Shown piece by piece: positions 55,982 to 64,000 of a stretch of 64,000 bases of DNA. The notes under the pieces are model-generated. The model ran no database searches. It worked only from the letters and a program-made list of their open reading frames with translations, and had not been told where the DNA came from. Each line of letters starts with the position of its first letter. Position 1 is the stretch's first letter. This DNA comes from Phaeosaccion multiseriatum (Eukaryota; Protista; Ochrophyta, other classes), in NCBI GenBank assembly GCA_965112735.1, contig OZ218953.1:4836001-4900000 (forward strand), given 5' to 3'. A program made the position numbers and the translations under genes.

Positions 55982-56363
55982 TCGACCCCTGACACGCTAT
56001 CCGCTAACGCTATCGCCGGCGCCAGCCGGCACGCTATCCGCTATCTCCGGCGCGCTATCCGCTATCGCCGGCGCAGCCGGCTCGCTATCCGCTATCGCCG
56101 GCGCGCAGCCGGCTCGCTATCCGCTATCGCCGGCGCCAGCCGGCGCGCTATCCGCTATCGCCAGCGTCAGCTGCTACCGCCCCCGGGGGGGGGGGGGGGT
56201 AGGGGGGGAGAGCTGACGCCAGCCGGCGCGCTATCCGCTATCGGCCGGCGCCAGCCGGCACGCTATCCGCTATCGGCCGGCGCCAGCCGGCACGCTATCC
56301 GCTATTGGCCGGCGGCCGATAGCGCGCTATCGAGAATGTGAGCGATAGCGTGTCAGGGGTGGA
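55982..56363. mobile_element. 382-bp MITE of the same family with an internal array of about 31 bp
   Basis: TCGACCCCTGACACGCTATC / GATAGCGTGTCAGGGGTGGA (1 mismatch), CTCCCT on both flanks, repeated GCTATCCGCTATCGCCGGCG units. Confidence 0.85.
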
Positions 56364-56709
56364 CTCCCTCCCTCACTCATCGACCCCTGACGTGCTATTA
56401 TGCTATCTGCGATAGCATGCTATTGGGCGCCCCGGCGCCCAATAGCATGCTATTTGCACTCGGCGAATAGCAGATAGCACGCCGGCTGGCGCCGGCGAAT
56501 AGCAGATAGCACGCCCCGTCGCGCCGGCGATAGCAGACGCCCTGCGACAGCCTTTCCACTCCTAGCTGCCTGCCTAATCAGCATACGTCGAGCGCAGAGA
56601 GTATGCGAGCCTTCAGTCTTATATTACCAATACAATGGTGGCTGGGCGAACCTTGGCGTTCCCCTCTCCCCCCATCTCCCTCTCTCGCGAGGCAGCCATC
56701 TCTCCTTCA

Positions 56710-59508
56710 CTAACCCAGGACGCACTTATGCAAGGCCGAGTTGTAAACGTCGGGCAAGGAACCGTTGCGCATCCCGGAGCTCAGGTACGCCCGAAAGAGG
56801 CGAGTTCTCTCTGCCTCATACTCTTCGCAGGTCAGACACGGCAGCCCACACGCGGCCAAGAAGCGGTCCACGGTCTCCTTCTTTGCCCCCGCCGCACTAG
56901 ACAAAATCGCTACACCGTCGTCCCTTTCCCAGCTGTTGTCTTGCTCAACACCATAGAGCACTTTGCGCACGGGGCTGGTGTCTGCCACAGCCAATTTCGA
57001 CATGAATAGAGCTGTTGCCGGACCGCAAGAATTCGAGCCGGCCTTCTGCTGTGGCACACCAACAAAGACCTGCCGGAATCGGAGGGCTGCCGTCCCAGGG
57101 GCTCTTTCGTCCTCCATGACCTTCTCCACATACACCTGCGTCGCTTGGAGCACTCGCTTCGAAGGGTGGTGACCGAGGCGCCCATTTCGGACCGTATCAA
57201 AGTGCAGAATGTACGCCATAGCACCCTCCCCGTCGTCACTAGCTGCAGAGGTAGGTAGAAGGACAGCGACAGTCGAGAAATGGCCGCTGAAACTCGCAGG
57301 GAGGACGAGGAGCTCACACTTCGTCATTGTAAGACCAGACTCCCTGTAACCTTTCGGCAGGAACCCTTTCGGAGCCGTCGCCAACACGTTGGGCATGGGG
57401 GAGTTCTCCACAGCTGGGTTGAAAATGTGACCAAGAGACGCGCACGGGAGTAGTGCCCTGTTTCCGTTCACGGATACAGTGGTCATCATCGCGTCCAAAA
57501 AGAAGGAGGTGTACTCCCCCTTTTCCTTGTGCATGTCCTGCTCAGCGCCGAGGACAAGCAGCCTCGCCTTCATGTCCCCTGTCAGCTGCTCAGCTTCGGC
57601 CACTGATTGTGCCGCAGGCATGGCCCTGCTTTTCTTCTGGTGGGAAGAAGGGCTGCTGCCCCCCTCCTGCTCCTCCTCCTCCTCCTCCTCCTGCTCCTCC
57701 TCCTCCCCCCCCTCCTGCTCCTCCTCCTCCTCCTCCTCCTCCTCCTCATCATCATCATCATCATCACCACCACCATCATCCTCCTCCTCCTCCTCCTCCT
57801 CCTGCTCCTCCTCCTCCTGCTTCCCCAACGCCGTCTTCAGTAGGAAGTGAGAGAGTGCAGCTTGCATGCTTTTCTGACCGCTCGATGAGTGGGAGTCTCT
57901 GTGGCGCTTAACGCCAGACAAATGAGTCCACTGAGGCTTGTACTTGCCCTTCCCGGCGCTCTGACAAGCAGGCCTGGTGCACACAACAGATACCAGCATA
58001 TCCAATGATGTTCTGGCGTGTCTGATGGAGAAGTTCGCTTTGGCCTCAAGCTGAATCAAAGCTGGCGTATGGATCTTCACGAAGCTTGCTGCATCACCGA
58101 CCTTGCTTCCGCTGAGAGTTTGCATCTCCACATCAGGCATTTCCCGCAAAAGATAAAAGAACTTGGTTCCTTGCGCGTGGAGCCAGCTCTTCGCCTTCTT
58201 CGTCAGTGCCCCCTCTTGCCCCGCCTTCCCGCCTTTCGTCCCGCCGGCACTCTCTCCCTCACTATCACTGGTGGTCTCACTGACACGGGCAGCACCACCT
58301 CGATGACCTGCCTTCTTGGGTGGGGTATGGGTCGAAAAATCTGTGGCGCTGTCCAGAGATTGGGTAGGGAAAGACAGGCAAATTTGCACGTTCTCCTGCT
58401 GTCTCGCCCCTGATTTCGGGCGTAAGCTCGCAGTACAGATCCAGTCTCCACCGTTTGTCGGGATCGATACGGCCCGGAGGGAAAGTGTAGAACGAGCGCA
58501 CCTGTATTGGGTGTGTGTTGGAGAAAGAGACAGAGAGGGGCGGGGGGGGGGGCGGGTTTAAGAAAGGGTTGCTGCCGTAGCAGACAATGCACAAACATCG
58601 AGAGGCAGTTGTACCCGACACGTACCACGCGGCGCAGGGAGACGTCGTCGCGGATTGTATCCAACCCTCTGCCACGTCTGAATGCCGTGGAGGCTCTGAT
58701 CGTGATGTCGTTCTTCTTTTGTTCCGTCTGAAAGAGCAATTCGCTGGTCAAATGTCCACGGAAGGCCTTGAAGCTGGAGAATCGCTTGTCTTCATTAGCC
58801 AGCTGGAACGTGTAGGGCAAGGTCTCGAAGAGCTCGGTCGTGTTGCAGGACACCGATGTGCCGAGACTGAAATCAGCCTCGACGGGGTTGAGGCATCCTC
58901 TTGGAAATGTCCCCACATGCGCGAACATGAGAGGGGTAGGTTTTGCCTGTCCCATCCCTGCACTCAGGGGCAAGGCATAATCGAAGTCTTGTGCCTCAGA
59001 AGACGATGCCAAGGTTGCCGTACTCTGGAGATAGGTGTCCTCAAGCCGCCCCCCCTCCTCCCACCCCAGCTCGTGAGAAGCGTGTTGTGAATGGCTGCTT
59101 CGGCGTACTCCCCTGTCGCTGGGACTTTGGTTCCGACGCATTTTCCTCGCGCCTGCTGGGAATCCTCTTTCGCTGGGACTGCGGCCCCGTCTCCCTTTGC
59201 TTCGACCCTTTTCTCCTTCCCTCCTCCCTCCTCCTCCTCCGGATCTGGGTCGGCTCCGACTCCTGCTGGTACTTCTCCCTGCCCTCCTCCTCTCGGTGTC
59301 CTTCCCCCTACTCTGACTCCTGCTGGCATTTCTCCCTCGCTTCCTCCTCTCACTGTGCTTCTCCCTGCTCCAACTCCTGCTGGCACTCCTCCCTCTCCTC
59401 GCCCTCTCAGGGGCCTTCTCCCGGCTCCGACTCCTGCTGCCAACTGGACTTGGCGTGCCTCTCCTGCTGTTGTAGTAGTCGCCACCCCCCCCCAACTCCT
59501 CCCTCCAT
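56710..59508 (-). CDS. Ulp1/C48 SUMO-protease-domain protein with RS-rich N-terminus, zinc finger and acidic tract (exons about 59508-58626, 58501-58390, 58307-56710)
   Basis: Catalytic H (SGHFS), D (HFDT) and Q...C (VPQQKAGSNSCG); CTRPAC...KRHRDSH finger. Splice phases are consistent. The start is uncertain: ATG 59508 is off-frame by one base across a G9 run. Confidence 0.8.
59254..59450. repeat. 57-bp coding minisatellite (about 3.5 copies) encoding 19-aa RS-rich repeats
   Basis: CTC.(G/A)ACTCCTGCTG recurs at 59254, 59311, 59368 and 59425. Confidence 0.85.
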
Positions 59509-59617
59509 CGCGGCCAGACATGAAGGACTTTTGAACCAGTGGGGCCCAGCCATGGGCCCAGCCAGCTATAAGCCAATAAAGATTCTGCCGTTTCACATTT
59601 GGCCACAAACAAAGGCG

Positions 59618-62600
59618 ATGGGCGCCGCGGGCTCGTCCGCGACAGAAGAAGACCATGGGCGGGTGGCTGTGACGGAAGACGCGGACAGCGGGCGTGTAGA
59701 GCTTACCCGGGACGTAAACGATGTCGACATTGTTCCCTTTGCGATCCAATTCCATCTTGATCGAGGGCACTTTACTCGGAGTCACTTCATGTATCAAACG
59801 GTGCATCGTTGGGTCATGAACAGCGGCCTTTGGTCCAGGCGTCAGACTGTGGCCGCGAGCAAGCAGCTCAATGGCTACGAGACGCTGCGACAGTTTAATG
59901 AGACCCAGCAGAACGTATTTGGTTCAGCATGCTCCATGCTCTCCTATGGGGCACCCCGCAGAAAGAAGGTTCGTGGCCCCAACGTCTCCAGGGACCAGGC
60001 CATGAAGGACTACTTCCGCAGGGCGAACACAGGCGGCTTTCATCCGAGAGCACTCATTAGGCGCAGGCCTGGCCTAATCAAGAGGTACGGTCTGCAAGTC
60101 GAAGACATTATCAACGTCGTCAATGTCTTCGCCCGCTTCTGTGCCGACCAAGCCTACACTCTTGGCGACAAAGGCAACGAGAAGATTGTGGTTCCCGTGA
60201 CTGTCAAAATGGATGGCTTCGTCATTGCCAAGGGCCATCATACTGATACAACCAGCCAAACCAATTGGGGCAATGCACATCAGTTTGGAAATACAACACT
60301 GGAGCAGGCGAAGGCAATACTGGAAAAGTCTGATGCTCAGGTGCGTGGCGTCCCCTCCTTCCCACTGATCTTTCGGGGCAGAATCACTGTTGATCCATCG
60401 TCAATCTTAATCACGCCTCCTCGCTCGCTCGCTCACGCTGCAGCCCCGCCTTTGCTTCGCCTCCTGTCAACCCTCCCTTATCGCTACTCGTTCTGTTCCA
60501 GCTGCGAGACGAGGACGCACCTAAGCTGGGTTCCGAGATGATGGAAGTTATGATGATGGATCTGAAAGGGGCATACACGGGCTCCATCGGTTTTCAGCTT
60601 CACACCGCAGGGGGTGACTACAAAAGTGTTGCCGCGAGCGTGACCGAAATCATGAAGGCGCTGCGTGTTTGCATCCCTTGTCTCGAGCTTTTCTGGCAGC
60701 GGATTCTGACGGGGGAGAACCCCTCGTGGGTGGAGATGGGCGAGGCGTGTGATTGCCACCAAGCTTGTCCCACCGGAGGGGAGGGTCCTTGCGGTGAAAG
60801 TGAGTGCGTTTGCGCGACTCAGTTCTCCAGCAGAGTCTGCTCGAGGTGCAAGAGGAAAGGGCTCGTGTGCAAGAGTCTCCGACCATTGTGCATCTCAACA
60901 GACTGTAATGGCGCACAGCTTGCCTTCATTCGGAAAATGGCGGCAAGAACCCTCGGAGAGGACGACCCCCTGGGGTGGTATGAGGCACTGCCTGACGGGG
61001 CTCACCTTGTAAAGTGTGTTCGTGCTACGACATTCAATTGGTGGGTCGTCTGCCAGGGCTGGCTAGTCGGACTGCGAACTCTTCGCGCCAGATTCCACGA
61101 TCTGGACCCGGCTCGAAGTGAAGCAGTACAAGCCAATGTTGGCCTTGACGCCATTGAAAACAAGGATCCTTTCTCAGTGGAGAGCGCAATCGCTGTTACG
61201 ACGGCGTCTCTGCAGTTGGCTCTACTCTCAGAGGAGGAGCGGGAGAAGCGCCGTGCTCTCGTGGGGGTGACCGTGTGCCCGGAGCCGTGGGGTTTCTGGC
61301 ATCAGAACATGGCCTCGCAGACTCAGAAGCCGACTGGTATGGGCTACCATCATGGCTCTGGCATGATCTTCAACGCCGATCGTTCAGGCAGGCATCTGCG
61401 CATGCTCAAGGCCCATCATGTGCCTTGTACCACAGAGGTTGTTCTGCGAGACGACTGCTTCCAGAGTCTTGGGTCTCTCGTCGTGGTTGGCGACTACGTG
61501 TACATGTGTGACAGTGGAGCGAATCAGATTTGGGTGGTGCATGTGCTGGCCGCTCTTCCAGGAAACAGGGGACCCCGCGCGGCGGCGGAGGAGGGCGACG
61601 ATGATGATGACGACGACCAGCAACCGGACGGGCATGTAGCAGCGCGTGGTCGGGGGAGACAGACTCAGCAACGGCATTTGAATTTGAAGGCAGTGCCCTT
61701 GGTCCGTCGGATCCAGGAGCGTTGCACTTCTGAGGAGAATGTCCTCGAGGAGAGAGAAGAGGAGGGCATCCGTTGCCCCGTTGCCATTGCGCTTGCCGTG
61801 TCCTCTGAGCGCGCGTTCGACCTCTTTGTCACCCAAGAGGAACCTGGCGGGGGGGGAGCACTACACCGGCTCTCATTTGACGCTGGCAACCCTTTTGCAC
61901 CTGTGAGCGAGAAGCTGTGTGACCTACCCAAGGGACCTGCGGGCCTCACAGCACTCTCGCATGACTGCGTTGCCTGCATCGCCGACAGCTCGCTTTTTGT
62001 CTGGGAGGGCAATGTGGAACGTGCCGGAGGACCAGAGGGTGGCAGTGGCAATGACGGAGATACACTCATGGCTCTGACTGATGACGAGGAAGATGGTACT
62101 GTTGAGAAGCCAAGGCGCGCACACCTCACGTGCGTGAAGTCTCACGTGGGGACTCAGCCTTGTGGACTCACGTTGGCCCCACCCGGTGCATACGATGATG
62201 AAGATGTGATCGTCATCCTCATGCTAGATGAAGGTTTGCATGCGCTTGTCAAGGTTCTCCTTCGTCGTGACAGTGGGGTGCTAAGCTGGAAGGGATCATC
62301 CGTGCTGATGGGCGGACAGGGAAACACAGAACCCGGAGAGAGCACTGCCAGCGGTACGGCATCGAAAGTACCTTTGTTCAGACCTACGTTCGGCTGCTTC
62401 GTGTACAACGCTTTCTTCTTGTCCGACACTGGAAACCAGTGCATTCGAATGATCTCGGACTGCTACGTCTACGCCCAGCACCTCATCCCACTACAACGGA
62501 TGTTGAGTGAGGCGTATCAGCTCCAGGGCGAAGACTTGGATGAGAATGGCAAAGACATGCAAAACAACGCACGCACGATGAAGGAGAGCATTGCCAAGCT

Positions 62601-64000
62601 TCATGTGGTCGACTTGGCTCTCAGTCACATGGGGAAAGCGATATCAGCTGCCACAGGCAAATCCCTGGTCTCTCTCCAGGGCCCTGAAGGAATGCCATCA
62701 CGCGAAGTTCGAGGTGCTATCAAGGCGAGCCTGCAGGCACTACCTCGGATGCTACATCGGATGCTTGCAGAGGTGAGAAGGGGGGTGCTCCCCATGGCTG
62801 TGTGCGTGTGTGTGCGTGAGTGCGTGAGTAAAAATGTCCGTGTCCGTGGGCGCGTGCGTTTGGAAATCAGCCTTGCCCTTTCGTCTCACGGCTTCGCTGT
62901 TCGCTCCTTGCTTGATGCTTCCTCGCTCATTTCCGTCAGCAGGGAGTGCCTCGCGGCATCGTGGAGAAGATGCAGATGAGGAGCGTTTTGACCCTCAATG
63001 TTGAGACTTTCTTCACGAAGCAAAGGGAAGGCCGCCAGGATGTTCCAGACGCTCTTGAGTATGCCCGAAGAAGGGGCCTTGTGATGCTTGAGGCTGCGAA
63101 GAAGGCCAACCCCAGCATGGGTTTTGCCTACTGCACAAGCAGCGTCAACAGCAGCGGTCGAAAGCTCAGGGCGGGATACCAGCTGGAGCAAAACGAGAGC
63201 AGATTGGTGGCTTCACCCGTGTTGAAGCGACCAAGGGTAGCGGAGAAGCTTGACGAAGGGCAACGGAAGCAGCGCAAGAAGGACACGCAGACGCTTCGCA
63301 ATGCGGCGGCTCGTCTTAGGAAGGTTCCGCAGCAGCGTGTAACCAACAAGAGGAAGTACAATGTTGGAGCGGCCCCGCGTTCGGTGGCGTTTGCTCCCAA
63401 CTCTGCGCAAAGCAACGACCCGAGTGGATACCTGTCGCGCTTGCATGAGAGCTCGGGAGCGAGGAAGCGCGGACAGAAAGGACGGAAGACCGGTGAATCC
63501 GTCCGAACTCGCATTCTCTACAGGGCAAATGACGTTGTGATAGTCAGGGCAGACAAGGGGTCGGAGGAGAGCTTTTTTCTTGCACAGCTTCGCGTCGATC
63601 TTCGGAAGGAGGTGATCGTCTCGAAGAAGGGACGAGGCTCCAAGCAGAAGGTGGTTCCGGCAAAGCCTGGTGTTTCATACTTTCACGTCGCTGAACAGGA
63701 CTCTACCGACGAGTCCCAGGACGGGGATGGGGCTGCAGCAGTCGTCTACGAAGTCGACGGCGGGAAAGAGGCTTCTGTGTCTTGTGCTGCCATTTATGGC
63801 GCATTGCCCCGCTACCACGAAGCAATGTACATCGAAGGCTCACATGCAGCTTCAGGAGGGGTGTGCGCGCAGAGAAGGCTTCGGAGGTTTGCCATCACGG
63901 AGGAGCAGCACGAGGAGTGCAAGCAGATTGTCAACAGAGAGGCGGAGGGCCAAGAGGTGGCCAAGGCGATGGGATACGCCCCCCCCGACCCAAGCGTGCA
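59618..64000 (+). CDS. P-element-like DDE transposase with a Cys cluster and NHL beta-propeller insertion (exons 59618-60340, 60502-62772, 62943->64000; 3'-partial)
   Basis: D1 VKMDGF (60212), D2 ISTDCNG (60901), DxxH PDGAHLVKCVR (60994), NKDPFSV, and E in LTLNVETFFTKQR (63003). All introns are phase 0 and the last exon is open to the window end. Confidence 0.75.

Follow-up and report, generated by a model that had tools for sequence, protein, structure and literature searches.

A predicted NHL-type beta-propeller nested within the catalytic domain of a P-like DDE transposase in Phaeosaccion multiseriatum

Introduction

The DDE transposase of the Drosophila P element cleaves DNA with an active site formed by D230, D303 and E531, and its guanosine triphosphate (GTP)-binding insertion domain is located between strand beta5 and helix alpha4 (PMC7776569). 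One ligand of the GTP, D528, stands three residues before E531, and P elements generate an 8-bp target duplication upon integration (PMC7776569). [quoted passage not shown] A different arrangement is known from RAG2, which combines a six-bladed propeller with a PHD finger (PMC4411706). Here we describe a cut-and-paste transposon in a 64-kb stretch of eukaryotic DNA from Phaeosaccion multiseriatum (the window; G000:C4:4836001-4900000, GC content ~58%, from a 67-Mb assembly in 22 pieces), whose transposase is predicted to carry a complete six-bladed propeller of the NHL type at the place of the P insertion domain. The insertion domains known from DDE transposases are helical and give shape to DNA at the active site, and a nested full beta-propeller is seemingly undescribed: in a literature search of incomplete coverage, no paper described a transposase with an internal propeller. 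We know of no NHL propeller inside a nuclease domain.

Results

The transposase gene is predicted to consist of three exons (59618-60340, 60502-62772 and 62940-64373) with a product of about 1,475 residues. All searches and structure models were made exon by exon. Exons and introns, with splice sites predicted from the sequence, are as follows:

59618-60340, plus strand: transposase exon 1, starting with the ATG at 59618 and 241 codons long; encodes the N-terminal region and, of the RNase H-like core, strand beta1
60341-60501, plus strand: intron 1, GT...AG, 161 bases
60502-62772, plus strand: transposase exon 2, 757 codons with no stop; strands beta2-beta5, Cys cluster, helices, NHL propeller, helices
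62773-62939, plus strand: intron 2, GT...AG, 167 bases, in phase
62940-64000 in the window, plus strand: transposase exon 3, running on to a stop at 64373 beyond the window; helix alpha4 with the putative catalytic Glu, conserved C-terminal region, PHD finger

With intron 1 removed (GT donor of exon 1 at 60341), exons 1 and 2 give a gap-free, collinear alignment with the uninterrupted N-terminal parts of 30 homologues, and homologue P0002 continues across the junction of exons 2 and 3 with no gap. The PHD finger near the C-terminus (~64206-64334, in exon 3) scores an E-value of 1e-11.

The original prediction, made from the letters of the window and a list of their open reading frames, had read about six NHL-like blades in frame between the DxxH region and the last catalytic residue. 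Structure models, fold searches and a family profile now place the following features in exon 2:

61255-62460, plus strand: predicted six-bladed NHL-type beta-propeller (exon 2 residues ~252-653)
61573-61662, plus strand: predicted disordered acidic loop in blade 2 (residues 358-387), containing seven consecutive Asp; pLDDT below 50, net charge -6
62008-62121, plus strand: predicted disordered acidic loop in blade 4 (residues 503-540), net charge -6

Modelling confirms the stretch 61255-62460 as the coding sequence of a six-bladed NHL-type propeller. The AlphaFold2 model of exon 2, built on an alignment of relatives found by HMMER, reached a mean predicted local distance difference test (pLDDT) of 87.7 and a predicted template modelling score (pTM) of 0.87. 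Residues 253-653 form some 25 strands in this model and are all-beta apart from the two disordered acidic loops. Strands were assigned to blades by deduction from their order, which gives blades at residues ~277-316, 323-406, 426-475, 479-546, 553-604 and 629-653; strand 253-259 probably closes the last blade. The six motifs that had been quoted as blades all lie in one frame of exon 2 (residues 275-302, 323-346, 424-432, 477-485, 551-585 and 625-651), each on predicted strands. The domain had been bounded at 61320-62460. Its end at 62460 is exact, and its start has to be moved some 65 bases upstream to ~61255 because strand 253-259 falls within the propeller range.

Fold searches agree with the model. 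The best Foldseek matches in the PDB were Pizza6, a protein designed from an NHL repeat, together with TRIM71 and the NHL domains of the PknD sensor and of teneurin, with E-values down to 4e-9 and TM scores of 0.73-0.79 by target. Alignment with VIA superposed residues 252/253-653 on Pizza6 with a Z of 28.3 (root mean square deviation (rmsd) 2.2-2.3 A over 245-246 of 250-251 residues); TRIM71, TRIM2, TRIM3, NHLRC2 and PknD followed with Z of 26.5-27.8, the rmsd being 2.2-2.9 A across the NHL matches. In the ESM Atlas, residues ~245-655 matched solely NHL/SGL propellers, with TM scores of 0.7-0.84 by target. A separate protein-atlas search returned a weak lead (0.82) to a cluster combining NHL and SAP.

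The same relationship is seen in sequence once the family as a whole is considered. Against PDB sequences the family profile found Pizza6 (E 3e-16), NHLRC2 (4e-14), PknD (4e-8) and TRIM71 (7e-6), and the Pfam NHL family (PF01436) was matched by eight of 89 homologues at a best E-value of 7.7e-9, and by P0019 at 9.6e-10 in a separate scan. A search of PDB sequences with exon 2 alone retrieved nothing relevant. Profile similarity to NHL is thus a property of the family and not of the window sequence taken singly.

The propeller core is net acidic (charge -8, isoelectric point 5.9). A divergent paralogue family at 36-39% identity (L015:4591-6117 in G000:C3, also L016-L019) retains an open propeller and C-terminal helices in one copy; in this family the loop between blades 4 and 5 has grown into a long poly-Glu run, placed where the window protein has the acidic loop of residues 503-540, and most copies contain stops.

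The position of the propeller follows from the conserved elements around it. The coordinates are:

60212-60214, plus strand: putative first catalytic Asp (KMDGF, exon 1), aligned with the near-invariant D of the family DGM motif in a column with at least 90% D
60901-60903, plus strand: putative second catalytic Asp (D134, STDC motif), right after strand 130-133; D in 58 of 58 aligned homologues
60994-61014, plus strand: DxxHxxK motif after beta5, aligned to SDTPHLIK of P; D165 in 61 of 67, H168 in 65 of 69 and K171 in 69 of 69 homologues
61015-61254, plus strand: predicted helical segment before the propeller (residues 172-251), holding ENKD at 61156-61167
62461-62772, plus strand: predicted helical segment after the propeller (residues 654-757), with conserved motifs R..LAEAF and QGPEGNFS..R
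63003-63005, plus strand: putative third catalytic residue, Glu (LNVETFFTKQR), at the start of exon 3

Alignment suggests that the catalytic triad comprises the Asp at 60212-60214, D134 at 60901-60903 and the Glu at 63003-63005. The Glu is invariant in 17 of 17 homologues and is followed by F at +3 and R at +7, both conserved in at least 90%, in the motif [ST]-L-x-V-E-x-F-F-x(3)-R. Searched as a profile, this region has a sole natural match in the PDB, namely residues 530-558 of the P element transposase (VEHFFGSMRS...), with the Glu placed on E531; as the E-value is 0.72, the worth of this match lies in its position. By this alignment the Glu belongs to exon 3, the exon following 60502-62772. 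The position equivalent to the GTP ligand D528 is occupied by Leu in the window protein and is hydrophobic in 15 of 16 family members, never Asp, which hints that GTP is not bound in the manner of P. Two other residues were considered as the catalytic Glu and dropped: E670 (LSEAYQL), whose column is just 85% acidic as against the invariant exon 3 Glu matching E531, and E261 (PE motif), which lies inside the propeller range.

Between beta5 (residues 161-164) and the exon 3 Glu there are some 615 residues, which the model divides into helices (166-249), the propeller (252-653) and further helices (654-757). The order proposed in the original prediction, with the propeller lying between the DxxH region (60994-61014) and the final Glu (63003-63005), holds. 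Its second proposal, that the propeller takes the position of the helical GTP-binding insertion of P, is borne out with one amendment. The propeller sits between beta5 and alpha4, the Glu aligns with E531 and the segment before the propeller matches 6P5A, and in the models helical remnants stand on each side of it, so that it is no clean swap for the helical insertion. We therefore regard it as very probable that the propeller is nested within the position that the all-helical GTP-binding insertion domain of P occupies between beta5 and alpha4 of the DDE domain.

The segment before the propeller was also folded alone. Residues 1-283 of exon 2 gave a pLDDT of 87.4, and helices 166-249 appear both in this model and in that of the entire exon. 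The sole meaningful Foldseek match in the PDB, at E 8e-3, was the strand-transfer complex of the Drosophila P element transposase (6P5A, 6PE2); the match ranked after it had an E-value of 1.4. A VIA search, which is independent of Foldseek, likewise placed 6P5A first (Z 6.7, rmsd 4.3 A, 174 residues, chain 237-485), with retroviral integrase cores and RNase H domains as runners-up at Z 3-4.3 and no Hermes match ranked above the integrase cores. As modelled, residues 1-283 form an RNase H-like core whose likeness to P extends into the helical insertion domain of P; because the alignment runs along chain 237-485, the first helical segment matches part of that domain.

Sequence signals for P were weaker. 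PF21787 (TNP-like_RNaseH_N) was weakly matched by five of 32 homologues at a best E-value of 5.8e-5 (P0050, 22.2 bits versus a cut-off of 24.6). A profile of the N-terminal part of the family placed D134 and the DxxH stretch on the segment of P from residue 296 onwards, in which D303 and SDTPHLIK lie (E 0.25). No protein scanned matched the Pfam GTP-binding-domain or RNaseH_C families. Weak as these signals are, all of them point to P and to no other family.

A conserved Cys cluster is inserted into the core:

60670-60906, plus strand: Cys cluster, exon 2 residues 57-135, between alpha1 and beta4

Its cysteines, eight or more in number, are conserved to 94-100% at residues 57, 60, 83, 89, 97, 113, 116 and 123. 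The cluster probably binds zinc; pLDDT is lower around residues 92-110. At residue 87 (60760-60762) the window protein has Gln where 44 of 47 family members have Cys, the adjoining Cys being present. This may be an alignment shift or an altered metal ligand.

An exhaustive HMMER search recovered 103 relatives, mostly unnamed metagenome proteins. Four module profiles (N-core, propeller, C-helices and E-motif) were then searched against all retrieved proteins, and every protein that was long enough showed the modules in this order within a single open reading frame (ORF), which amounts to more than 30 cluster representatives. About a dozen of the long homologues had contributed only their N-terminal part to the profiles, so that their propeller, C-helices and E-motif matches are independent detections. 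Among them is XP_014674326.1 of the priapulid Priapulus caudatus, with the same module order. The original prediction had pointed to proteins of similar layout in marine invertebrates, which this protein bears out. A homologue search with residues 270-757 gave no match, a negative of little weight because the protein of about 1,475 residues probably falls outside the length band of that search. Identity to the window protein is 21-37% in the propeller and 28-40% in the core, and the propeller is therefore conserved like the core and is not decaying.

A JGI metagenome contig of 7,707 bases (L033) carries a homologous transposase with a PHD finger in ORFs of 227 and 1,072 codons. The split between the two matches the break between exons 1 and 2, and exon 1 of the window is homologous to the upstream ORF (E 9e-15). 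Members of the family with this gene structure are consequently found in an environmental eukaryote as well.

The gene lies in the following element:

56380-64000 in the window: cut-and-paste transposon, 8,373 bp, running on to 64752, 752 bases beyond the window (G000:C4:4892380-4900752)
56380-56410, plus strand: left 31-bp terminal inverted repeat, TCGACCCCTG...
64722-64752, beyond the window: right 31-bp terminal inverted repeat

The two 31-bp ends repeat each other perfectly in inverted orientation, and the genome holds 14 exact instances of them, which make up seven complete elements of 8.35-8.40 kb and nothing else. The window copy is 99.5-99.7% identical to four other copies over ~8.37 kb with sharp edges, and three copies are flanked by clean 6-bp target duplications (TGATTT, GGAAGG and TTATCA). 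Exon 2 is open in five copies at 99-100% identity and interrupted by a stop or frameshift in two. Older, divergent families at 33-41% identity are also present in the genome and mostly decayed. Given seven near-identical copies, the element was recently active.

The window copy itself has inserted into a microsatellite of (TCAC)n/(TCCC)n units, seen at 56355-56379 and again immediately beyond 64752, and its duplication is not a clean 6-mer (cactca versus tcactc). The copy at G000:C13:327255-335647 is about 20 bases longer than the window element; its pairwise match ends some 20 bases short, within GCGCCGGC/ATAGCA subterminal repeats, and both of its 31-bp ends are intact. This suggests repeat-number variation near the right end of that copy.

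The element further contains a minus-strand ORF of 559 codons (56710-58389). In a Pfam scan at E-values up to 1 it showed no peptidase C48, just low-complexity matches to a poly-Glu/Asp run; the gene of L033 at the same position is unrelated to it.

The locus is represented in four sequencing runs of one sample, the kind of run not being on record. Whole-element contigs in runs X1 and X3 have depths of 20-25. Run X4 contains a 1,273-base contig at a depth of ~698 that covers only the 3' part of exon 3 including the PHD region (63123-64000, continuing to ~64395); it may represent the 3' portion of a transcript or else an additional fragment that is repeated. Within intron 2, a simple repeat of the GTGTGCGTG type (62799-62831) draws 31-base contigs in large numbers in each of the four runs, with depths that reach several hundred. 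This word is a common genomic microsatellite.

Discussion

Our analysis points to a young DDE transposon whose transposase, nearest to that of the P element, harbors an NHL propeller inside its catalytic domain, where the propeller may serve as a contact platform. With the architecture weighted heavily and the function lightly, we consider this the best explanation overall and a likely one.

Several points qualify it. The D/D/E triad was assigned by sequence alignment with the exons modelled singly. A complex prediction of the parts before and after the propeller scored 0.00, with alignments unused and the partner poorly folded, and so speaks neither for nor against. The Pfam scan that the original prediction had proposed detects NHL in the homologues, as given above, and in the window's own exons finds neither NHL nor any P-element or transposase match at E-values up to 1. 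In the four runs the locus appears as unspliced contigs with no joints. On the functional side, net charge is a crude guide. Finally, the sequence links to P are each weak (E 0.25, 0.72 and 5.8e-5, the last under the Pfam cut-off); a THAP domain found no match in exon 1 of the window, in 32 N-terminal segments or in seven full-length homologues, none of which matched the Pfam GTP-binding domain either; and the target duplication is 6 bp versus 8 bp in P.

This last group of observations would fit a transposase that is not P-like and belongs to a separate DDE superfamily, its likeness to P being that of a shared RNase H fold together with C/DxxH and E..F motifs common to several superfamilies. 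The Z of 6.7, middling by the scale of the tool, would fit as well. We nevertheless think this alternative unlikely. In two independent fold searches 6P5A stands alone on top, and the alignment passes from the RNase H core into the insertion domain. Moreover, three separate segments (PF21787, the D303/DxxH stretch and VE.FF..R) indicate P and no other family.

For a P-like enzyme with a nested propeller, function has to be read from position and composition. Insertion domains adjoin the active site and the DNA, so a propeller grafted there would sit beside the DNA-cleavage center. The propeller might be a protein- or chromatin-contact platform with a part in selecting or retaining the target, or in gating catalysis. 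We favor this role because of the position, the acidic core and loops, and the PHD finger on the same chain, and regard it as quite possible, though rather short of probable. The acidic composition favors a protein partner, e.g. basic chromatin proteins, or an internal regulatory role.

Alternatively, the propeller could be a nucleic-acid-binding module as in Brat and TRIM71, which would grip an end of the transposon, target DNA or a cofactor RNA at the active site and so take over the DNA positioning that bound GTP performs in P. One of the closest structural matches (Z 27.8) is the NHL domain of TRIM71, solved as an RNA complex, and the position of D528 is hydrophobic in 15 of 16 family members and never Asp. 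The P insertion domain, too, touches transposon and target DNA, and its GTP positions the terminal base (PMC7776569). Against this stand the net acidic core (-8, pI 5.9) and the two acidic disordered loops. RNA-binding NHL faces are basic, and the acidic composition speaks weakly against a TRIM-NHL-like RNA or DNA face. Direct nucleic-acid binding is hence the less likely option and in our view improbable.

The propeller could also have no outside ligand at all and act as a structural or oligomerization scaffold that joins the protomers of the transpososome, or as an autoinhibitory plug. Its conservation equals that of the core, the module order is fixed throughout the family, and the pTM of 0.87 for exon 2 suggests rigid packing on the flanks. 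Insertion domains of other transposases are known to aid assembly (PMC7776569). We hold a scaffold or plug to be unlikely, about as much so as nucleic-acid binding, and leave a similar share of probability unassigned. That the propeller stretch does not belong to the transposase can virtually be dismissed, whether it be read as a host exon that was captured and is removed by splicing, as a gene of its own, or as an artefact of assembly or annotation. The unspliced contigs from runs of unrecorded kind would allow it, but in five copies a single open frame of 757 codons runs through core, propeller and helices. Unrelated samples and one animal genome together supply more than 30 homologues with that order in single ORFs, and the exon 2 model packs the parts together (pTM 0.87).

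Returning to the contact platform, such a role would functionally resemble that of the RAG2 propeller and PHD finger as partner of RAG1. A wider and more doubtful proposal, which we put forward tentatively, is that of a eukaryotic transposon lineage, widespread from protists to a priapulid and not yet named, whose transposase would join in one chain a DDE nuclease of P-like kind, an NHL propeller inside it and a PHD finger at the C-terminus. It would be a fused, independent counterpart of RAG1 plus RAG2, in which propeller and PHD finger couple cleavage or target capture to chromatin marks and thereby replace the GTP cofactor of P. If propeller and PHD finger do couple cleavage to chromatin or to a partner supplied by the host, the RAG1-RAG2 logic would have arisen in a second, independent instance, and the element would offer a natural case of built-in target selection, of interest to transposon biology and for targeted insertion tools. 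As the element looks intact and young, it is open to direct testing.

Comparison with known systems places the enzyme nearest to the P-type DDE transposases, either as a deep, heavily modified branch of P or as a new superfamily. Like the P element and THAP9 (6P5A, 6PE2; PF21787-PF21789), it appears to have a DDE RNase H-like core that a large insertion interrupts between beta5 and alpha4. Shared, too, are a DxxH motif of the SD.PH..K type following beta5, the VE.FF..R motif that holds the putative catalytic Glu, and terminal inverted repeats of 31 bp. Unlike P, it lacks a THAP domain and possesses a Cys cluster between alpha1 and beta4 and a C-terminal PHD finger; its insertion contains an NHL propeller between helices whereas that of P is a purely helical GTP-binding domain; and a hydrophobic residue replaces the GTP ligand D528. 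Hermes (hAT), Tn5 and RAG1 share with it an extra domain at the same beta5-alpha4 position and a Glu in an E..F-type motif, but their insertion domains are helical. TRIM71/LIN-41, TRIM2/3, Brat, NHLRC2, PknD and the teneurin NHL domain share the six-bladed fold and, by family profile, sequence similarity. In these ligases, kinases and adhesion proteins, however, the propeller forms a terminal or an extracellular domain, while the window propeller shows an acidic core and two long, disordered loops that are acidic as well. RAG1-RAG2 and the RAG-like/Transib systems likewise combine a DDE core with an insertion domain, a propeller of six blades and also a PHD finger. In RAG the propeller is of the Kelch type and resides with the PHD finger on a separate protein, and the nuclease is Transib-like; in the window protein, as modelled, a single chain carries an NHL-type propeller inside the catalytic domain. 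The resemblance to RAG1-RAG2 is one of analogy and not of homology.

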